DNA from: Takakia lepidozioides
Lineage: Eukaryota; Plantae; Bryophyta
Direction: 5' to 3'
Assembly: GCA_030704615.1 (NCBI GenBank)
Contig: CM060732.1
Coordinates: 35,960,001-36,024,000 of the forward strand
DNA length: 64,000 nucleotides
Part shown: piece by piece, positions 26,901-48,599 of the stretch
How positions within the stretch are numbered: the first letter of the stretch is position 1
Layout of the letters: each line of letters opens with the position of its first letter
Translations under genes and position numbers: made by a program
Notes under the pieces: model-generated
Seen by the model: only the letters and a program-made list of their open reading frames with translations
Database searches by the model: none
What the model was told of the DNA's origin: nothing

Positions 26901-29900
26901 AGCCCAATGGCATCCATGGTCATGAGACGGACTCCGACTTTGATAGGCCGGAAGCTGCACCTCGTTCTCCACAATTGGACCCGCTGCCTGAGGAGCCCAA
27001 CTCTCCTGGTTTTGAAGGTGATCCTAACTTGAGCATTGGATTTTCAGGTTAGCTATATTTAAAGTTGATAGACTTCTCTAAAGATGTCTTCATCATCCAG
27101 CATTAGAGCTCCTTGATTAATTTCGTCGACAAAAACTAAATCCTGGTTGTTTTGTCTTAGAAGAACCTACCGTTATAGATCTACATGGGAGAGTTAGGTT
27201 TTCTGGAGGTGTGGCATCCTCACTCGTGTCTTGTATGTGACACATTCATGATCATCATGCAAAAAGGTGGACTCAGATGTTTTGAGATGTCACTGCAGCA
27301 ATGTAACTTTCGGCTTGTCTGAGAGCCATTGTGTCCAATATCATGGATGTGCTAGTCACCGTCCAACCATTGCCTGAAAGATAGAAAGGTGGTCGAGTTT
27401 TTCCTCCTTTGTCGGCAATTGTAAGAGGCTCAGCCAAATTGTGTGCACAGATGGTGACCCACTCCCGGGCATCGATGGCTTGCGAATTGTGGGTGATGCC
27501 GTGTTGGGTGGTCGATTGACTGCGTGCGGCCACCCTCTCAATGGCACCGCCCTTTGTATTTTCCAGGTTCTTTCCCCTTCTCCTTTTGGACGCTAGATTG
27601 GTGTGGATGTGAAGCCATTTTGGGGTGTAGGGTGCGGGCAGGTGTACACCTGGTAACTGGATGACTCGATTCATGTATTGTAAATTGTCTGGGCTAGTCA
27701 CACAGGTTTTTCTCACATTCAGGGTGCTTGCAAACATGTGTGAATTGTAGCTGGCAAATGAAAGTGATTGTGCTTTGGAGAGGCTGCTTGGGAAGGATTC
27801 TGGAAGTTGTCTAGTGTTATTGGTTTCTGAAGTGGAAGAAAGGAACCCTTGGCCTGTTGACGATGAACCCTGTCCATGAGTTTTTTATGAGAAGTGTTGG
27901 TTACTTGTTGGCGACAGTGGGTGCGGCATTATCAGAATGGGAGTGTAGCTTACATTGAAGGTACTACTCCTTGCTATGTATGGATTCGATGTAGTGGTAG
28001 TTTCTACGTGCATTTATTTCTTTGAAGAGAAGAATGCATTCAAAAATAAAGTTCAACTCACAGACGATTATGTGCTCACCTAAAGGTGGAAAAGGCAGCT
28101 GTACTGATGTGGGGTAGCCCCAGTATCCAAATAAGAGAGACCAGTTATAAATTTCCCAGAGCCAACTCTGAGTCATACAGTTGCCAAAGTTGTGCAAGTA
28201 GCCTTCCTACCAGTAAAAGGAACTGTCCTCCAAAAATAGAAGCAAAGTGAATGTCGGTGGAAGGGGAGTGGTCAAAGAGCCAAGGCTTTAATCTGTACCA
28301 AAAAGCCAGGGGTCCTCCTTGCTTCTCTCCCTGTCCTTAATCATGGTAAGCTGCTTTCACACCACCAAGGGCTTGCCAGTTCTCTAGATCTCAATCTGCT
28401 TTGTGGCAAGAAACTGGTGCACTTCAGCTCAGTGTTACTTTACCAGTGGTTTTTTGGCTGTGAACTCTTGGTTTTATTGGGTCAATAAAAACTGTCTTTG
28501 AAGGCGCCCATATCCAGCCAAAAACTGGCTTATGACATTGTGGGGGCTGGGTGCAATGCAATCACAGGAGCAGCACAGCCACAGTACACTATCACTGCCG
28601 ATGACATTGACTCTATGGTTGCTATTGAATGTGTGCCGATGGATGAGCGTGGTCGTAGAGTAAGTGCTGCATCTTTTGTAGGAATTTGACAGTCCCTTCC
28701 TAGAAATGTGCACTTGTGCCTTGTATCTCTTGACAGCCATCTTTTCTCCAAGGAGCATGGGGATATTTGCAGAACAGCCTTTTAAACTTATTGATAAATT
28801 ACTGTCATAGATTGCAGGATGGGGATGATTTTCAACAAGTTCTGATATTGATGGAACAAAACCTTTACAGCATGGTCCTGCTGACAATAGGTCGCAGCTA
28901 TAACAATTGAGAACTGCCTTTCCTTGACCTTAGCTTCGTGCTCATAAGGTAGGAGACATCATGATGATTGTCTCACATTGGTATGGAAACCCCTAGGTGC
29001 TATGTGAGCTCTAGTTTGCTAGATTTCATGCACCTTGAAATCAAACAGAGATCTTTGGACTCCATCCTTGACTAGTTCTCAACAAAGAATATTCAAGTGC
29101 ATTTGGGGATTGTATGACTGTACTCCAAACCACGAAAACTTATCTTTTTGTGTGGTTGTGCCTGGTCTGCAGGGTGATCACGTGACTGTGATGGCCAACG
29201 ATGGCAACTGGATAACACGAGGTCAGCCCTCCTTCTGAATTTCATGCATGTCCTATATCTTTCTAATTTGAGAAAAGACCGCATGTAGAAGCTGAGGTAC
29301 AGGTCTACATATCTGTCTGTCTTTTATCCTGCTTTGTCCAAGGTGGCCCCCCTGTGGACATTTTAAAGTCAATGCTTTGGTTTTCTTTGTTCTCAGTTTT
29401 GTTCTTCAGTGGTTCTTTCTTATGTCCCTTAGGCCCTCCCTTGGGCCGAAATACGTCTTGGTTCTTCGTCTCTCTCTCTCTCTCACTCTGTGTCACTGTT
29501 AACGGACAGAAGTCCAACTTCTTTGACATAGACCAAGGTGTAGCTCAAGGATGTACTCTCTCCCCTCTGCTGGTGGACCTGATGGTATTGTCAACGAGCT
29601 TATCAAGCACGGTGGCGATCCCATGATAGAGGCCCTAGTTCTCCTCTTTAACCTTATCTGGAAGACTGAAATGATCCCCTTTCGCTGGCGACAGGGGGTC
29701 ATTGTCAATCTATACAAGAAGAGTGACAGAGAAGAACCGGGGAACTACCGTGGCATCACGCTCCTCAATGCTGTTGGCAAGACATTCTGCAGAGTTATAA
29801 GTACTCGTCTCGAGGTTGATCTGGAGTCTAGAGGTTGTTTCCACGAAGGCCAAGCTGGCTTTCGGCGAAACAGGGGCTGTGTGGATCATATCTTCACTCT

Positions 29901-32900
29901 AAGCCAGATTATCCAGGGAAGGAAAAAAGAAGGGAAACCCACTTATGTTTTTTTCCTGGATGTCAAAAAGGCTTATGACACAGTGTGGAGAGATGGCCTA
30001 TGGTTCCGCCTCTGGTCTTGTGGGATCAAGGGAAAGATGTGGAGAGTTGTCCACAACTTGTATGCTCACACCAAAAGCTGTGTCACTGTTAACGGACAGA
30101 AGTCCAACTTCTTTGACATAGACCAAGGTGTAGCTCAAGGATGTACTCTCTCCCCTCTGCTCTTCAATGTTTTCATCAATCAGCTCCTCGAGGATGTGGA
30201 AAGTGAGGGATTTGGGTTAAGGGTGGGTGATACCACCATACCAGCCCTTATGTTTGCGGATGACTTCGCAGGCATAGGGGAGACTCCAACCAATCTCCAG
30301 GAGTTGATTGATTGCGCGAAGAGATACTTTGATCTTTGGGGGCTAGAGGCTAATGTCAGCAAATGTGCAGTGGTAGCATTCAACGACAGAGGAGAGGGAG
30401 GAAGTGATCTTAAGTGGCAGTGGGGTAGCCAAGAGATCCCGGTCCTCCCTTCCTACACTTACCTGGGCGTTGAGTTCTCCTCCAATTGTAATTGGGATGC
30501 ACATATCCGGAAAGTTGTTCAAACTGGCAAGGGCAAAGCTCTGGGGCTCACTAAATTTTTCCACTGCAGAGGGGTCAACTCTGAGGTCAAGAAAACCTTG
30601 CTTTGTCGCGTTATTAGACCTGCCTTGGAGTACGGATCTGCTATATGGGTTGATAACTCCAACCAGGCTAAGTCTCTAGAATCCATTCAAGTGGGGGTGC
30701 TTAAGGAGTGTATGTCAGCATGCTCCAAAACAGCCAATGTGGCTGTTTTGGGTGAGTTTGGCATTCCGTCCTTACGCTCCCGACGAGATGAATTCAAGGT
30801 CAGATGGTGGGGTCAGCTGCAACATATGCCCAACACCAGATATCCTAAGTTAATCGACTCTATATCTTGGAAACAGGACTGCCCTGTCAAACAGGCTAAG
30901 TCCTGGCAGAAGAGAGTAGAAGAGATCCTCAAGGACCTGGACCTGGATCCGCAAGTCTTGACCCTGCTGGATAAATCTGACTTAGAGGCTGTAGTGTCCT
31001 CAGCCATGTCTGTTGCCATGAGATTGTCTGATGAAAATGAAGTTAGGCAGAAAACTTCCCTGAACTTGTTTCCAGTCTGTGATGTGGGGGAGGACATCTT
31101 GGATGACCTCAAGGGTCTACCCACTCTCGGCACTAGACTGAAATTTAAACTCAGGGCAGGAAGCCTACCTTTGAACAGCAAACAGAAGCAGAGAGGAAAG
31201 GGAGAGTGCAATTGCCCGTTGTGTGGGCAATCTGAAGACAGTACTCATTTTCTGATACACTGTCCGGGGTTCTCTCACCAAAGAGACGCTCTCTTCAAAT
31301 CTATTAAGGGAATTGTGTCTGTACCCCTGTTTACCAACTTTGAAAGTCTCGAGGCTGAGCCAAAAGCCCAGGCCCTCCTGAGGCCTAGTTTTTGGGCAAA
31401 TCACACACAGCAGATTGATGCTTGTGTGAAGGGATTTCTAGAGGATATCTGGAAAACCCAGATTAATTCTTTATATGGAGGTAAGTCTTACTACCAACGT
31501 CAGCCCCTGACAGAGGTAGGTTCTGTCCCTTTTGTTCCCGCTCAAACTGGGCGCGGGGTCAATGGCCACAAGGCTACGGCAAACAACGTCTTATGAGTAC
31601 AATCTCTGTCGCTCTGTGTGGCTTGACATGCCGACAACGCCCCTGTTTGAAGTTCTTGAGAAGCAAAACATGGAATGTGCTTGGTGATCTTCAAGTTGGG
31701 ATCAAAATGGTCTGTGGATAATCTGGTCATGGAGAAGAACTTTCTTCTTAGATTCGTGGAATGCGATTTCTTTTTATTAGAAGAACATAAAATAGTATGG
31801 GACTATGTGCTATGGCAATCTCAGGCTGGCCCTGGAACGGTTGATATGAATACAATCTGTTCCTTTAAGATACTAACTCTGTTATTTTTGTCATGGGTGT
31901 GTAACCAGATTCAATGATGCAAGATCAGATTGAGAGCTACAGCACCGCTGGACATGCAAGCTTTGAAGTACAGTTACTGGTCTGAGTTCCCTGCTGCCCT
32001 CTCCTTACAAGTTCCATATTTGTTGTCCATGTAATTGAACATCCTGCTGGTCAGGTCTGCTCAAGTGTGTGTGCTTGGAAAGCTCTATTGAACATGTATT
32101 TGGGCAATTTAACGAATGTGCAAGTTTGGAAAACACATGAAACAGAGGCTTGTTGCAGTGCATAACTTCACACATGCGCTCAATGATGCGTGTAGGAGTA
32201 GGTTTTGGGTGTAATTGGTGACCCTTATCGCTCTGAGTTGCTGAGGTGGGAGGTTGCACAGATGGAAGGAGCTTCTGATGAAAGTATGGAGCCTGCCATT
32301 CTGACCCTGCGGCGCTCCAATTATGAGCTGCGCAAAAACACTACGCGTAGAGTAGTCATCAGTGAAAAATATGCTTCAGATACCTCTGTATGTCCCCCTC
32401 CCCCTCAGGTTCAACTTCTGTTGCTATGGTTTCATATAAATTTAAAGGTTCCTCATCAGTGATGGATGCCTATCTATGAAGATTTGTAGTGCTTAGTAGC
32501 TTACCTGCATGAGGCAGCCTGTCTCCCAGCAAGATAAGCGTGTCATCATACACTCTTTTGGTTTTCCCTTGTAGTTCTGTGTATAGACCCTATGGGCTGC
32601 AATCAATTTATCTCCTCTTGTCCTATGTCCCTTTATGCGTAATTTGACTTTCGTTGTATTGACTGTTGAAGCCTGTGTGGCCTCTTAGGAACTGATGGAA
32701 TGATGGGGCATTGTACTTGGCAGATTAAAATACCTGTGGGCCATTTCATACAGTGCCTGATTACAAGCCATGATGGCAGACAATATTACCTTGAATTCCG
32801 GGATAGCCGGTAAGTTTATTTTTTATTGCCTTAAATAAATACAATTGAACTCCTGCAGGATGAGAGGTGAACTATACTTGTCTTGTGGCTTAGATGTTTG

Positions 32901-40741: not shown

Positions 40742-41956
40742 CTACATCCTCTGTCTGACTCGCCTGCCACTGGCGTCAGTTCCGTCAGAGAGTTGGCCCC
40801 ACACGCTCCTGTTTCGAATTGATCCCCCTCCTCCCCCTCCTCCCCCTCCCGCATCCTCATAGACTCCAGCAACAGTTCTCAACAGCTCAGACTGCAACGA
40901 TGGACAGCTTTCTCGTAGGTACTCGAAGCCATCTGAATGCATAACTGCTGCAAGGTTTGCTGCGGCAAACTTAAGACAGACAGCCTTTAACTCTGACGCA
41001 TGGTGCTGCTCTGCAAGGGCAAGGGTAGTGGCCACCGTATCTGTGCTCACATTCTCACACAGCTTGGACTCACAAAGCAGGCGTAATCGGTCGAGACCAT
41101 ACCGATCTGCTGCTGCTAGAAGGTGTTGCGCCAACAGAGTGGACGCAGATGATCCTGTCAAATCCTTAGAGTCAGGAAGAGCATCCCTGTAGATAAAATG
41201 CAGCAGAGCCTTGAATACGGGTGCTTCAATGTCAGCAATCTGAAGGTTTCCACTGTTCCGGTCACGCATTGGCCCGAAAAGCTGGGCTTTGAAGACTGGC
41301 GAACGAGCAGCTAATACCAGTTTATGTGCATGGAATGTCTCACCATCTACCTCAAATATTACATCCGTGCCCTCTCCATTTTCAAACAGCGCACCAAAAT
41401 GCTGACCTAGGTCCGGCTCTGGCACAGGAATGTGATATAGCCTGGGACCTTGCGTAGACGACACAACCACCCCCACCGTACACGTAATTGCAAGGCTATC
41501 ATTCTTCAAGAAATCCGAAGTTTCCAGAACGGCGCGCCTAAAAAACCGCTTGTAACCCCACATGCTGCCGCGATACTTGAGAGTGTAAGGACCACTCTCA
41601 AGCGAGCTATCAAAATGGCTGTGCACCTTGTGTTTGGCCTTGCCGCTCTGGTCCAAGAGCGTCAGTTCGAACAGCGCTCGAACATCTGTGCCCTCGCTTG
41701 CTAATGCTATGAAAACAGACACGTACAGGGAATTGTCTTCCGCATTCTTGCCATCGGGGTAGAATTAGATGGCCCACTGGTATCCCCCGACAGTGAAGCT
41801 CTCACTGGCAATGTACTTCCCCACTCCCATGCCCTTTGCAAGCGAATATCCATTAATGGTGAAGTGATGCGAGCCATTTACAGTTTCTGTCACACAGCGT
41901 GACCGCGTATTGCTATTACTACCAGCGCCTGTGCTTGCCATGGGTGTCCGGGCCAT
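40742..41956 (-). pseudogene. Intronless BTB/POZ-MATH (BPM-like) gene with a single in-frame TAA at 41765-41767
   Basis: 405 collinear codons: MATH ([44 protein letters not shown]) and BTB ([25 protein letters not shown]), C-terminus GRRVRQRM. The stop replaces the conserved Tyr of WAIYFYPDG. Confidence 0.9.
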
Positions 41957-42452
41957 GAGATTCCGCCTGCCTCATCCCCTGCCTGTATGTCTACCTCCTT
42001 TCCTTGTTCCCAGTCTCGGCAGCGGCATGTGCCTGCTATGCTAGAGCTCGCAGCAGCTAACCCTTGGCTCGCTTTGCTGGTGGCAGACCTAATGCGGCAC
42101 TCTGGTCTGTCTTGCGCTGCGCGAGGTAGTTGTAGAAAGCTCTAGCACCTGCCCTGCCGCTGCCCACAAATGACTTTGACTCGCGCGCTCGCTAACAATC
42201 GCTAACGTAATCCGCCACGTCTCTGTCGTGCTCGCCACCCTAATTCCTTTCTTCCACGCTCTCTGTTACTTACAGTACGCACCCTCCGACACCGACTCGC
42301 GAGTCGCGACTTGTTTGCTGCTCGCTAGCCTACCGTAAAGGATTTTGGGGGCAGATTCTGCCGTTTTTGAGGCAAATTAGGATGCAGAAGATCGACGCTC
42401 CACGGCGCTGGCGCTTTCTGCATTCCTAAAGAACCGGGCCATATGTCTTAGC

Positions 42453-42712
42453 GTATAAATATGTTCATTATTTACCTGAATGCCCCGCCGGTGCGTGAGG
42501 AGGCAATATGGCGCGGTGTATTGCACGGTGCACATTATACCCGGTATAATGCTCATTATTTACCTGAATGACCCGCCGTGCGTGAGGAGGCAATATGGCG
42601 CGGTGTATTGCACGGTGCACATTATACCCGGTATAATGCTCATTATTTACCTGAATGACCCGCCGTGCGTGAGGTGGACTTGGCGCGGTGTATTGCACGA
42701 TGCACATTATAC
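42453..42712. repeat. 87-88 bp tandem repeat, about 3 copies, with the palindrome CATTATAC-CCG-GTATAATG at unit junctions
   Basis: CATTATTTACCTGAATG at 42466, 42554 and 42641. Confidence 0.95.
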
Positions 42713-42970
42713 ACCCCCTTCTAATGCACTGCCCTCATCTTTTGGGGTTCAAATCTTTTCTTTTCGCGCTAGATTTCTTTTAGCAATTTCTTCCAAGCCA
42801 AAAATGCCGTTGATAGTTTTCCAGGAAATGGCGCAAAGTTTACTGAAATTGTTCAAACAGCTTCTGTTGTGTACATGAATTCGTAGCAATGTGCCGCACC
42901 TTCTACGTATCTACGGCGGCAATGTGCCAAACACCAACCCTAATCACTCATTTTCTTTCGCAGGCGCCTT

Positions 42971-44979
42971 CTAGACAAGTGCAGCACGTAGCAGATTGGC
43001 TGCTTGAATAGCATCACCTGTCACATTCAGTGTAATGATGTTGCAGTTTTGCATATTGTTAAAATTATGCCCAGCCTGCACTCGAACTGTAGTAGCAGGA
43101 AAATGATGCAACATCGAAGTATCACATTGCACAAGCTCACGTTCAGCCTGCACAAACAATCCATCTGGCATGTTGAACAAATTTTCCTCGTTCCGCTTAG
43201 CCGGAATGGATTTCCCTGCAGTCTCCAACGCACTGGGATCAACCGCCGCATTAGGGTGAACAATGACAAGATTATTAGGAATAGAACCTAAAATCTGCCG
43301 AAGTGCAGGAGACTCCATCTCCAAAACAGAACCCTGTTGGACCTTACCGTACGCTTGGACTTCATACTGTAAAGCATCAACAAACAGCAGGGTTTTGCCC
43401 TCGTGTTTTTCACCAGAAACAATACGTTGAGCAGCCCGGTCTTGCAACATCTTGTCAACACAAGAATACTTCTCGTAGCTCTCTTCATCGCGATGCCTTG
43501 TTATCTGCATCCCTGTCCTCGAGGCACAAATGCCTCTTGCATACGAGTTATGCCGGTGCTCCTTCCAGATTTATTGGAAATGATCTTATCCTGCAAACCT
43601 GGAACTCCATTGGTCATTTTTTTTGTCATGCCCCCTAGCGTGTTCCTGCCGACAGGCCCTTTTGAGAACCACGCGACATCGTTGGGTTCAAATTTCGAAA
43701 GCGGCGTGAAAAACAACGGGTGAGGAGGCTTTTCCTCCACACTAAAAACAAGTCGGTGCAATACAAGCACCTCGAAGGTATGGATAACATCAACAACAGG
43801 GCCTATCACAGGTTTATGGAGGTTGTGAACTCCGCATTTTTCAATACCTACTTTGGAGGTTTTCGTAATCCCTGAAGTGTATTTTAAAACTCTGCCGAGA
43901 ACAGTATTGGTAGTTGTAAAGTCCTGCATCTTGATAGCATGCATCTCCGACGCAGCACGGATGAAGATATTCTGCATTGCTACCCACACAAATCTGAAAT
44001 TAGCGCCACTAGGAGAGTCGACTTGACACATTGGTTGTGCCAGAACAAGAAGCTCTTCATCGAGCGTTAATAAGTGTGAGTTCTTCACAACTTTCCCCAG
44101 GCCAGCCCCGAAGGCCCTCATTATAGTCTCATCACCTACTATCTTTGCTTTTTGGTAGCGAACATCAGTGAAGATGTTGAATCGTTCCTGTACTTTGCTA
44201 TTCTGGATAGCCCTTACATTGCACCGCGCTCGAATTAACCGACCTAAACCACGCATCAGGGATTGCAGTGATTTGGGTGGATACACTTCTAAAATGAACT
44301 GAGGTAGCATATCGACAAATGGATGCAAATCTTCCTGTTCAGACAGGTCCTCCACAAAGATATTGGTATGATAGCCTTTCTCCGAACTCCAGTTGTCAAA
44401 GGTCTTGCGCGCACATTCTTCTGCAGGTCGGCTCCTTCTCCGACCACCTTCGTCGACAATCTTCAGCTCCTGACCAGAAATGGTCATGTGCCGTCGTTTA
44501 GCAAGCTCTGCAAGTTGTACAACTACACTCTCCTCATCCGAGGAGGAATTATCACTCCCCGAGCCTTCGTCGATACCTTGATACGCAGGTACATCATTGT
44601 CTCTTACCACAACAACATGCTCAAGTGGTTGTGCATTCGGCACCTCATCTTGCAATTCGACCTTAACACCCGCCAATTCGACACCAGCATTCTGCAATTC
44701 GGCAACCAGCAATTCAACTTCAATCGACGAGTACAAACCTGTAAGCAAATTGTCCTCTACACATTGTGCGGTGAACAAATAAGCAGCAGATACTTCTTCC
44801 GTAGAATTGACAGCAAGTTTCACATCCAATTCGACCTCAACAACATAAATATCAGAATCAAGAACAATTTCTTCAGGCAGGTCTGAAAAATTCACTCCAA
44901 GATCAAAATTCGGCAATTCCACTTCTGTGCATTGGCGTTTAGCAGACACGCCATCCTCTCTATCAATTATAGCCTCCAT
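42971..44979 (-). pseudogene. DUF3504/Crypton-type tyrosine recombinase, one frameshift near 43510
   Basis: FILEV-YPPKSL, FNIFTDVRY, GLGKVVK..LTLDEE, DSPSG, FIRAASEMH (catalytic R), KYTSGITKT (K), LFFTP, WFSKGPVGRNTL, ISNKSGRSTGIT (HxxR position, K for H), then after the frameshift MQITRHRDEESYEKY (H, Y). Acidic N-terminal region. Confidence 0.8.
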
Positions 44980-45619
44980 CGTCACAAGCAATCACCGCAA
45001 CAGAGTTGAGTAGACGCTGCAAAAAGTGAGTGTTACCGAAAACAAGCTGCAAACACAGCTGATACCAAACATGAGCGATAAAAGAAAAGCCACAAGCCAA
45101 CGCCAAAATGACTTACTAAAGAAAACGGGAAAGAAAATGAAATATGGCCTGTTTCTTTACACAGGATAATGCCCCTTGTGTCGGGCATTCCCGGATTTAA
45201 GTGCCTTCCTTGGGCTACCGCCCTCGAGGTCAGGCCCTTAAATCCGGGAATGCCCTCCACTCGGGGCATTACCCAATACCTAATCAGCTGTTTGACTCTC
45301 CTAATCGGCAGTTTGACTTTAATTGGCTCATTATGGCTTGCAGCCAATGAGCGCCTCGTAGAATCTGCTCCCAAAAGTCCTTTGCGCCAGGGAACGCGCC
45401 CTAGGGGGCGCATTCTCTAATACGGAAAACACTCTCACTCTCACTATTCTTCGACTCATCAACCTTAGCTAGGATATCATGGAGCTGGAGATTGAACCCA
45501 AGATCTCATGGCGCTGAAGCATTGAACATAGAATTTCATGTGGTTCAAGCATTGAACCCAGGATCTCAGGAGCTTGAGAGCATTAAATAAGTTTTGCCCT
45601 GGGCCCACCAGCCCCACCA

Positions 45620-45828
45620 AGGGGTCAAGAACCGGAACCTGTTTTTACCCCTGCGCCCCGGTTCTCTGGTTCTCACACCCAGCAGGAACCGCCGGTTCGG
45701 TTCTGCGCCGATCCCCATTGGCAAGTTCCGGTTCCGGGTCAGGTTCTGTAGGAATGGGCCCGGTTCCGGTTAACTTGAACCTGAACCAGCGGTTAACCTG
45801 GGTCCCGGCGGGTAACCGCCCAACACTG
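45620..45828. mobile_element. Right end of a hAT-like non-autonomous element
   Basis: Repeated AACCGG/GGTTCCGG subterminal motifs ending in GCCCAACACTG (reverse complement CAGTGTTGGGC). The left end was not found. Confidence 0.5.
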
Positions 45829-48599
45829 GTTCAAACCCCCCTTAGAGCCAAAATGACTTTTCAAACAGCGGATGAAAAATTGCTTTTCCCATCCATTGGT
45901 CATCCATTGTTCATCCCTCCAACGGATGAAAAATTGCATTTATCATCTCGTCTTCATCCACCCTACATCCATCCATCCTTCCTTCATCCGCCATCATCCA
46001 TCCACAAAAAATCTCTACTCAACGCCACGAGTCGAGGATTTGGTCGTTTCTCTGGTTTGAAACCCCTAAAAGCCTTGGTTCGAGTTCCATGGATTTTCTC
46101 TCCTCTAATTCCCGCCGAGGTGTCTCGTGTTGCTTTGCGATGCCGTTTTGGACTATAGGTTCATTTTATGGCTCTAGACTACGACTTCCAAACCCTCAAG
46201 AGCCCCTTCAAAATTCCCCTCTAGCCGTTATAGTGGCCTAATCATCCCACATACCTAACCAACAAAGGGTATTAATCCTCCAAAAGGATTTGATCTTGCC
46301 ACCCCCCTTAATCAACATCCGCTGGACAATAGCAAATAAAGAACTATATCTATTACCCAGCAGTCCCCTGGCCTGACAGATCCCGCACTGCCGCGACGCT
46401 ATTGGCTGAAAACGGGGCCAGTCAATGGTCAATGGGGTCTTATCCAATGGGTAAAAGCTCCAACCAAGGGATCCGGACGGGATTTGAAGCCCCCCCACCA
46501 CTGCTTAAGCCTGCGCGACAGCCGTGGGCCTGGAGCCAGTCAACGCCTCCCCCTTTTCTCGTGGTTTGTGTTTAGTACCACACAATAGCCAGCTTTGGCT
46601 ATTGACTTAAGCATAAAGGCCCATCATCATGGCCCACTTTAGTTCCATCATGCCGAAAAAAGAAAACACCATCCCCCCATAATATGCCAACTTTTGTGGG
46701 TTATACTAACCCTTGGGGTTAGTAAAAAAAAAAAACATATTAGTTCCTTAAAAAATGAGGTCCCTCAAGCTTATATGGGTTATGGGGGCCTAAACTTGGT
46801 GGAATCAAGCTCTGAAAATTGGGTTGGGAAGGTATTTAAGATTCCAACGACATGGGACAAAGTAAATATTATACTTGCAAAAAAAATTCATTCTTCCTAC
46901 CTTCTTGGTTTCCTCTCTCTCCCATGAGGGAAAATGAAGCCTAGTGAAGAGGACAAAAGAAGGTTAGACCTAGTTGCTCTAGGCTCCTCTCCCTTAACTT
47001 CAAATGACAAAAAGAACTAACACTCATATTTATTCCAAGCTTGAACTAAGCTAATCATTGCATGGTTAGTCTTGGAAGTCAAGGGTTAGTGATTCATCAA
47101 TTTGAACAATACAAAGGCCTAGTGGCCAACATAAAAAGAACCCACATCCACATTAGAGCTACCCCGACACTGCATAGTTAGCACTCTTAGGTTAGATCTT
47201 TCTACTCTTAAGCCAAAAGACAACACATGGAACAAAATGACAACTCCTTGGGCTCTTGGCCACTAAGGAGGGTTAGGTTTTTTTTTTTTTTCCCAAGCTC
47301 CCACCACTATCTTAGTTAGTAAGACCAAGCTAAGGTTAATTCAAAGGTTTCCAACAACAATGGACAAACCAACAACACAAAATGCAAACAAAAATGGACA
47401 AAGGGCTAAGAACTTTCTCTTCATTCAAAGGGTCTTCATTTGGCTAAGTGGGCTACCAAAACTTAGATGGAAGGGGTAGTGCTCACCTCTCCTATGGGGT
47501 TTGTTACTCATATCTCCTCTTCACACTCCAAGGGCTTCGTCATGTTTGCTGAGGTACTTAACACAGCAAAATCCCAGTCGGCCGCTATCGCTGGATAAAA
47601 CCTCTTTAGGATTTTTTTTTATGAGACCAAGACTCCTTGGAAGCTCCTTGAACTGATTTCATACTAAAAAGTGGAAATGCCCTCATGGGAAAAAGATATC
47701 ACTGTCGGTACTTCGCTGCTTGCCGCACTACAGTGTCTGTTTTGCATGAAAGAACTAAAACACAAGGGAACCCATGCTTGATCCCTGTCACTGACATATC
47801 CGAGCATGAAAATGGAATCGTATCATGAGCATGTGTGCTTCACGCCTCCAACGTCCTCATGAAACTGCATTGGAGCAATGTGAAAATTTCTACTTGTACA
47901 TTGCGAGACTGTTGTCAACCGTGTCGTTGAAAGTATAAGCCAGTGGGTAGTTTGTCGTTGAGGTCAAACTTTCCTAACTTGCCTCTGCTTGAATAGCAAT
48001 TGGATGTTGAGGTAAGGAACAGGCAGACCGTTGCCTACAGTCATTTAATCGGCCCCTAGGTGTTCGAACGGAGAAGCAACACCCAAATGACCCTTTACTG
48101 CCTCGTACGTACTTGGTGTGTCAGGATATTCCTCCTTAGCAAGTGGAAGAAGAAATACAATGTTCTAGTATTTTTCCCTTGACATCCACGATAAGACTTT
48201 TTTGCAAGCGGTTGCATAATCTGTAACCATCCATGCTCCATTTGTTGAAAGTGATGTAGTCCGACAATCAAACATCCACAATGTTTGAGCTTGGGGGGAA
48301 GTGTGATCTTGGCTTCGGGCTCGTCTTAAAGATGGAGCGCTTGGGGCTGGTACTGAAGTAGAGCTGGGGGGCCCTAGAATCATCATTGACGTGCTTCTCA
48401 ACGGGACTCAATTTCATACGGGTTCAACACCTACAATCCGAAATCCGCAGTTTAAATATGTAATTCACTTTGCAATTATCTTTGTATGGTAGTTTAGATA
48501 TCTGCTTCATTAATCTGCACTACTTTTGCAAATAGTGTACTATGTTATAAGTTTTGTAATTCGCATTATATTTGTCCGTAGGACATTATTTTAATAAAA

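Follow-up and report, generated by a model that had tools for sequence, protein, structure and literature searches.

The DNA studied here is a stretch of 64,000 nucleotides from Takakia lepidozioides (assembly GCA_030704615.1, contig CM060732.1, positions 35,960,001 to 36,024,000 of the forward strand), which as a whole we call the window and to which all coordinates refer. Its minus strand carries a tyrosine-recombinase gene that is broken into two open reading frames (ORFs) and lies within a unit of 2,854 bp; this unit in turn interrupts a repeat of approx. 199 bp that resembles a miniature inverted-repeat transposable element (MITE). With a probability of about 80% we regard the unit, 42425-45278, as a defective 2.85-kb transposon of the Crypton class, belonging to a plant-specific branch of the DUF3504/CryptonA-type recombinases. 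An initial annotation, made from the sequence of the window, had proposed a Crypton-type transposon of a land plant at this place, either ancient or horizontally acquired. The features of the locus are collected in Table 1.

Table 1. Features of the recombinase-bearing unit, of the host repeat that it interrupts and of the surrounding DNA.
Feature	Position	Strand	Remarks
Left part of ~199-bp MITE-like host repeat	42334-42424	.	includes inverted-repeat arm 42334-42360; outside the Crypton
3'-terminal pentamer TTAGG (CCTAA on +)	42425-42429	-	one of two 5-bp direct repeats; putative crossover core
3'-terminal segment X, ~21 nt	42427-42447	-	inverted copy lies beside the 5' palindrome
Tandem array, 87 bp x 2.9	42461-42712	.	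19-nt palindrome in each unit; 3' non-coding part of the element
Recombinase ORF, piece 2	42971-43510	-	179 aa; His-II and Tyr nucleophile (TRHRDEESYEKY); C-terminus is the plant-clade tail RAAQRIVSGE...
Frameshift site	43511-43513	-	1 base missing from Gly codon relative to intact homologues; -1 shift needed for read-through
Recombinase ORF, piece 1	43501-44991	-	496 aa; first ATG at 44979; acidic N-terminal region, core-binding-type domain, catalytic domain through Arg-I, Lys-beta and KxxR
X', inverted copy of 3' terminus	45139-45159	-	directly after inner palindrome arm
5'-terminal palindrome	45164-45274	-	arms 45164-45206 and 45232-45274, 43 nt each, 86% complementary
5' terminus TATTGGG	45272-45278	-	TAT(T/A)GGG in relatives; conservation begins here
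Target-side pentamer TTAGG	45279-45283	-	second copy of the 5-bp direct repeat
Right part of ~199-bp host repeat	45284-45386	.	includes inverted-repeat arm 45359-45386
Abundant separate repeat	45475-45830	.	100-280x flank depth; right limit 45830 from loose ends with unlike flanks
30-bp tandem units of the separate repeat	45471-45584		
MATH-BTB (BPM) gene	40742-41956	-	directly beside the host repeat
PLS-type pentatricopeptide repeat (PPR) gene, 1,084 aa	60479-63733	-	with E/E+ motifs
Reverse-transcriptase ORF	29551-31596	+	RVT_1, 6.7e-34

Three-frame translation showed that at 43511-43513 the reading passes from the first ORF to the second by a -1 shift: frame 0 ends on SNKSGRSTGITRMQEAFVPRGQGCR and a stop codon, and the other frame reads on as GMQITRHRDEESYEKY. 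Intact homologues are unbroken across this region, where they share VPxxxGMxxTGH(R/K)xxxSYxxY, and we therefore concluded that one base was lost from a Gly codon in the window copy. The break falls between KxxR and H..Y. In addition, 7 residues are absent, in frame, before YPPKSL in comparison with all aligned homologues. The minus-strand gene at 42971-44979 with one frameshift was found as the initial annotation had described it, its inactivation included, and the peptide segments quoted there as DUF3504-like (YPPKSL, DSPSG, WFSKGPVGRNTL, SNKSGRST and ITRHR...Y) all occur in the ORFs.

A programmed -1 frameshift was considered and set aside: a canonical slippery heptamer was lacking and most homologues are continuous, and the break was therefore treated as a mutation. 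A relative with 39% identity (L010, Logan SRR33208251) carries at 1590-1660 an independent -1 frameshift, approx. 5 codons upstream of that of the window and in the same linker between KxxR and GH..Y. Two Adiantum models (P0023 and P0154) likewise diverge directly after VPREE. Coincidence, a mutational hot spot or regulation may lie behind the shared position.

The two ORF pieces were searched separately. An exhaustive phmmer search with residues 188-496 matched 208 relatives, 54 of them at E<=1e-10. Among 99 aligned relatives, profile matches were obtained to DUF3504 in 45 (best 1.6e-37), to QRICH1 (PF25561) in 19 and to Phage_integrase in 17. The close relatives P0001 and P0003 scored 30.1 and 31.7 bits and so lie above the DUF3504 cut-off, and a language-model feature search gave a score of 0.97 to DUF3504 clusters. 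A word-indexed protein search gave no match with the whole 496-aa ORF and 3 matches only with the family profile; NCBIfam and single-sequence PDB searches returned noise only. Homology as such is firm from the phmmer matches and the profiles of the relatives, and by transitive homology the protein would hold its place in the DUF3504/CryptonA type as a divergent sister clade.

The AlphaFold (AF2) model built from the 99-sequence alignment reached a predicted local distance difference test score (pLDDT) of 92.4 and a predicted template-modelling score (pTM) of 0.77. Its top match in Foldseek was Cre, over both domains (E 6e-7, approx. 315 aligned columns), followed by QRICH1 (9hjt_H), Tn1549 Int, XerH, IntI, Flp, XerA and lambda Int; the probabilities for Cre, Tn1549 Int, XerH, IntI, Flp and lambda Int were 0.95-1.0. 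The gene codes for a single two-domain Cre-like tyrosine recombinase of the DNA_BRE_C superfamily.

When the family profile was aligned with the integrase 3nkh, NKSGR fell on SHILR, the GH motifs coincided and the nucleophile was matched by the second of the two Tyr in SYxKY. The Lys of the family thus stands opposite a His of 3nkh, and its Arg, His and Tyr each opposite a residue of their own kind. The active-site set of the window copy comprises Arg-I in FIRAASE, Lys-beta in TKTSK, KSGR, His-II in TRHR and Tyr (EKY) at H+9; all catalytic residues are retained, yet divided by the frameshift, with Lys in place of His-I. Each residue of the motif order R..K..KxxR..H..Y listed by the initial annotation is present, and the Lys at the HxxR His position that it had pointed out is real. 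The His-I column holds Lys in 19/22 plant-clade rows and His in 15/18 animal-type rows, and judging from the alignment this Lys is a signature of the whole plant clade, not a peculiarity of the window copy. An R...KxxR...Y variant is catalytically active in SSV1-type archaeal integrases (PMC8371274), where KxxR is thus compatible with catalysis.

The ends of the element were obtained from same-organism contigs of three runs aligned to 41700-46200 (4,501 letters), with 589-834 contigs per run on this stretch at 85-100% identity. Contigs were found that join 42424 straight to 45279, with 5 letters fitting on either side; 42425-42429 equals 45279-45283, both CCTAA on the + strand. These paralogous copies represent the uninterrupted form of the host repeat, which was reconstructed as 199 bp with the element inserted at position 96. 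Loose ends with unlike flanks occurred in 7-8 contigs before 42334 and in 8 contigs behind 45283, and a 445-nt contig of another copy aligned from 42427 onward, with 121 unaligned letters before this point. The element therefore comprises 42425-45278, 2,854 bp, and the span of 42334-45417 given by the initial annotation had to be redrawn to these contig joints and conserved ends. The bounding inverted repeat of about 26 bp that had been described there is real: its arms, 42334-42360 and 45359-45386 (27/28 nt), differ by 2-3 mismatches and a single indel. From the joints and the unlike flanks, however, these arms belong to the ~199-bp MITE-like repeat that was the target of the insertion and not to the transposon. 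A target-site duplication of the 199-bp repeat was looked for and none was found. The element itself has 5-bp direct repeats and not terminal inverted repeats (TIRs), and short terminal direct repeats without TIRs are a published hallmark of Cryptons (PMC3212892). Two candidates were dropped, the 27-bp inverted repeat as a terminus, on account of the contig joints and of conservation with relatives starting at 45278-45279, and the hairpin 45164-45283 as an unrelated MITE, on account of contig evidence and the same kind of conservation.

These data also bear on a reading that we consider improbable, in which the whole of 42334-45386 is a transposon with 27-bp TIRs and the ~199-bp repeats are its MITE deletion derivatives, with the breakpoint at a 5-bp microhomology. 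It can draw on the inverted repeat, whose outer left end is the repeat boundary at 42334, on the way in which MITEs usually occur, short elements paired with long ones, and on a 15-16-nt arm motif, TTGGGAGCAG(G)ATTCT, found in the terminal palindrome arm of a distant relative (L004). Conservation across species, however, begins at 45278-45279 and not at 45386; eight contigs part into unlike flanks after 45283, a further copy has its end at 42427 and other DNA beyond it, and copies of the L004 family lack such terminal repeats at both ends. Nor does this reading sit well with a host-repeat depth of ~10-20x the gene depth or with the 445-nt contig, which already points to gene-bearing copies outside the 199-bp repeat. 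The arm motif itself recurs in both terminal-palindrome arms of L004 (1085-1100), and the ~199-bp repeat may belong, as a non-autonomous element, to a different Crypton subfamily of the genome.

Copy abundance was judged from summed contig depth, which is not a true copy number, relative to a single-copy flank depth of 22.7, 35 and 48.5 in the three runs. The coding part reached 4-9x flank and the parts 42334-42424, 45164-45283 and 45284-45386 approx. 80-150x, with ~80x for 42334-42424 and ~150x for the palindrome 45164-45274. The depth of the hairpin unit alone thus implies many solo palindromes in the genome. Joints from 43972 to 44739, from 44096 to 44423 and from 42552 to 42839 mark internal-deletion derivatives of the element. 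Several gene-bearing copies and deletion derivatives are present in the same organism and the element is multicopy. Within the 64-kb window no second copy of any element part was found.

A relative of 843 aa (P0152) is encoded on plant-associated metagenome contigs of the Joint Genome Institute (L001-L007), in a unit of 3,645 bp that is 99.6-100% identical in at least 3 different flank contexts. In this young family, to which L004 belongs, the 3' pentamer is constant (TTACG) and the 5'-flank pentamer varies (TTATG, TGACG), a pattern that fits an element-carried crossover core better than a target-site duplication.

Apart from the split recombinase, 42425-45278 gave no protein-family match, the other ORFs being short overlapping or antisense frames. 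The non-coding DNA of the element is conserved at its ends. L011, the nearest relative (48% protein identity), resembles the window in its DNA from 45279 inward and across the hairpin (71% over 115 nt, E=3e-8). The DNA of a Riccia locus (L009) aligns to the window in the same way, and flanks are unrelated up to the pentamer in every case. The 5' ends read TTATG followed by TATTGGGTAACGG in the unit of L001-L007 and TTAGG followed by TATTGGGTAATGC in the window; the 3' end of the element is TTANG. A palindrome was found at the 5' end of all loci with upstream sequence, namely the window, L011, L009, L004 and, more loosely, L008. Folded as DNA, these palindromes gave z-scores of -8 to -14, that of the window having -49 kcal/mol and z=-10. 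Compensatory changes on both sides were counted in 12/47 stem pairs from three sequences only, and symmetry is kept while the sequence drifts.

Next to the inner palindrome arm lies an inverted copy of the 3' terminus (X' in Table 1), which matches X at 18/21 positions, the best such match in the whole element (p<0.001 by shuffles). Corresponding copies were present in L004 (22/27) and L011 (25/28), with p<=0.002 for each of the three; in all of them the copy sits at element position 125-157 and is the best reverse-complement match. Inner arm and X' together are the complement of the junction of the 3' end with the 5' end. On this comparison the cis-architecture is conserved in at least two other species. 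The hairpins reported in the initial annotation were recovered as the palindrome 45164-45274 and as the palindromes within the 87-bp array (TRF score 446, 95% matches; repeat families D1 and I2). In one paralogous copy 42553-42838, the array region, is replaced by 33 nt.

Such a segment resembles the internal complementary region (ICR) of DIRS elements, which is formally defined by its complementarity to both the start and the end of an element (PMC6681497). The element might for that reason be taken as the remnant of a DIRS-like retrotransposon after loss of gag, reverse transcriptase (RT) and RNase H, and the ICR-like segment, which meets this definition, would then be explained. We consider this very unlikely, as uninterrupted host-repeat copies delimit a 2,854-bp unit with the recombinase ORF only. 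No RT or RNase H ORF was found within it, and the sole RT ORF of the window lies 11 kb away on the other strand. The same recombinase-only layout recurs in L004 (3.6 kb) and L011 (1.8 kb), and the protein groups with DUF3504/CryptonA.

Relatives with a name came from Riccia, Marchantia, Calypogeia, Ceratodon, Diphasiastrum and Adiantum. Riccia sorocarpa has four proteins on four different contigs of 46-56 Mb, and several come from Adiantum capillus-veneris and A. nelumboides, among them copies that share >90% identity although they lie on separate chromosome-scale contigs (161-178 Mb). Calypogeia fissa, Marchantia polymorpha, M. paleacea, Ceratodon purpureus and Diphasiastrum complanatum complete the set, and among the named phmmer matches none was from a seed plant. 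A maximum-likelihood tree of 51 rows, most of them unnamed and none a known fungal sequence, separated two clades, each with 100% support in the Shimodaira-Hasegawa-like approximate likelihood ratio test (SH-aLRT). One holds the window and every named plant sequence, the other has strong DUF3504, QRICH1 and Phage_integrase matches and includes QRICH1-like proteins of Haliotis. This phylogeny places the plant clade apart from the animal type, with the animal DUF3504/QRICH1-type CryptonA as its sister clade. At the Adiantum P0023 locus the recombinase gene is followed, 4.7 kb downstream, by a gene that has a Replitron_HUH domain.

Because the clade spans liverworts, mosses, lycophytes and ferns, long residence in plants is favoured over a recent fungal transfer, and the element is more likely old in plants. 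What stands of the earlier proposal is a DUF3504-related tyrosine-recombinase transposon in a land plant, with old residence preferred to horizontal acquisition. Glomeromycota carry DUF3504 Cryptons and inhabit bryophyte thalli (PMC13465315), and a recent acquisition from such an associate, for instance of a 'Glomhopper' CryptonA, or plain contamination might be envisaged. We find this hard to credit: the flanking genes are plant genes (BPM and a PLS-type PPR), a 2.2-kb contig links the flank with the host repeat, plant sequences with 40-50% identity are the closest relatives, and KxxR is common to the plant clade, whereas the animal-type clade has HxxR instead. Contamination, which had been named among the grounds against the initial annotation, is made unlikely by the same flanks and bridging contig, and a fungal transfer is unlikely in a tree from which known fungal sequences are absent. 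The BPM neighbour is 85-87% identical to proteins of Sphagnum, Physcomitrium and Riccia and 73-77% to lycophyte ones.

Least credible is a domesticated or decaying, immobile host gene of recombinase origin, like ZMYM/QRICH1 in animals: DUF3504 genes are classic domestication products (PMC3212892) and one conserved member of the family, in Marchantia, has catalytic motifs that are degenerate, but the element occurs in multiple, diverged copies alongside deletion derivatives, its ends are sharp and carry direct repeats, its host repeat also occurs without the insertion, and the window copy has kept its catalytic residues in a broken frame together with a conserved cis-palindrome. The Marchantia protein (P0059, M. 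polymorpha Mp5g04240 / MARPO_0141s0031), which UniProt labels 'DUF3504 domain-containing', shares a 90%-identity cluster with its M. paleacea counterpart, has NRPGR and no GH, and is a candidate domesticated Crypton gene. A Crypton accounts for the boundaries and for the conservation across species better than any of these rival explanations.

If the element is a Crypton, an intact recombinase would exchange strands within the 5-bp core at either end and so release a circle, and the circle would re-insert at T(T/G)ANG-like targets, with a core that tolerates mismatch. In the circle, or in a tandem junction, the 3' end and the 5' palindrome would combine into a longer palindrome whose arms measure ~70-90 nt, one of them containing the junction, and this structure would serve as a platform for recombinase binding and synapsis. 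The window copy would be mobilisable only in trans, by an intact recombinase.

Several points weigh against the Crypton interpretation as a whole. The window copy is unable to make a full recombinase without a -1 frameshift, and the direct match of its protein to Pfam DUF3504 (PF12012) is weak, below the cut-off of 29.7 bits (E=0.019, 15.4 bits). None of the RNA runs searched contained the element. Transposition, the circle and recombinase activity are predictions, the putative binding sites and the crossover position are deduced from sequence pattern, and catalysis by KxxR in place of HxxR is likewise predicted for this family. Copy numbers are represented by summed depths, and the 'plant-specific' character of the branch is read from the named rows among a majority of unnamed ones.

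In comparison with known systems, the plant elements share with animal CryptonA and with the Glomhoppers of Glomeromycota a tyrosine recombinase with DUF3504/QRICH1-type domains as the only ORF and the lack of RT. They differ from CryptonA in KxxR instead of HxxR, in a conserved C-terminal tail RAAQRI.SGE and in Pfam scores mostly below or near the cut-off, and they have a terminal palindrome and an ICR-like segment, whereas animal Cryptons are reported without terminal repeats (PMC3212892). With CryptonS and CryptonF of oomycetes, diatoms and fungi they have in common terminal direct repeats of 5-6 bp taken as recombination substrate, which in CryptonS are mostly TATGG (PMC3212892) and here TTAGG or TTANG. 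The recombinase lineage is a different one, and a GCR1_C domain and a peptidase ORF are absent here. The internal segment complementary to the beginning and the end is shared with DIRS1-type elements (PMC6681497); RT/RNase H, gag and long inverted terminal repeats are not, and the ICR-like segment here is the inner arm of the 5'-terminal palindrome. SSV1-type archaeal integrases share R...KxxR...Y without close sequence relationship, and the Lys was acquired independently. The two-domain fold is that of Cre/loxP and of the Tn916/Tn1549 integrases, to which the predicted circular intermediate and the exchange in a short core would add a further likeness. The predicted tolerance of a mismatched core resembles the coupling sequences of Tn916/Tn1549. 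Unlike these systems the element is eukaryotic, its palindrome is far longer than the 13-bp lox arm, and the junction would lie inside an arm and not in a spacer as in Cre/loxP.

In the literature searched, Cryptons are described from fungi, animals and stramenopiles, and DUF3504 is termed an opisthokont domain, widespread in Opisthokonta (PMC3212892, PMC13465315). In the searchable literature, with Repbase reports and subscription journals outside the search, no description of Crypton elements in land plants, Marchantia or fern was found, nor any plant work on DUF3504; in one survey Crypton simply appears in a list of the superfamilies that all groups were recorded to have. The plant lineage is apparently undescribed as a transposon family, its proteins being already on record. 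Of all eukaryotic DNA transposons Cryptons are the class least understood, with ends that are hard to define and a mechanism unshown experimentally. With the present locus and its relatives, the range of the class widens to include liverworts, mosses, lycophytes and ferns. Transposable element annotation is corrected as well, the inverted repeats being those of the target repeat and not of the transposon. Exact ends, uninterrupted repeat copies, a co-varying palindrome and young copies of 99.6-100% identity make for a tractable system in which end recognition can be studied.

Only tentatively do we go further and propose an old, still recently active Crypton lineage of non-seed land plants, with a KxxR active site and a long-palindrome platform whose end-to-end junction and inverted copy would be a DNA-only counterpart of the DIRS ICR. 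If this is true, ICR-type architecture would be a substrate feature of the recombinase branch and not an adaptation to reverse transcription, the substrate being perhaps a hairpin, a cruciform or a pair of crossover sites in inverted orientation. On this view the many solo palindromes would represent minimal non-autonomous elements of the lineage, and there would be a mechanistic link between Cryptons and DIRS elements.

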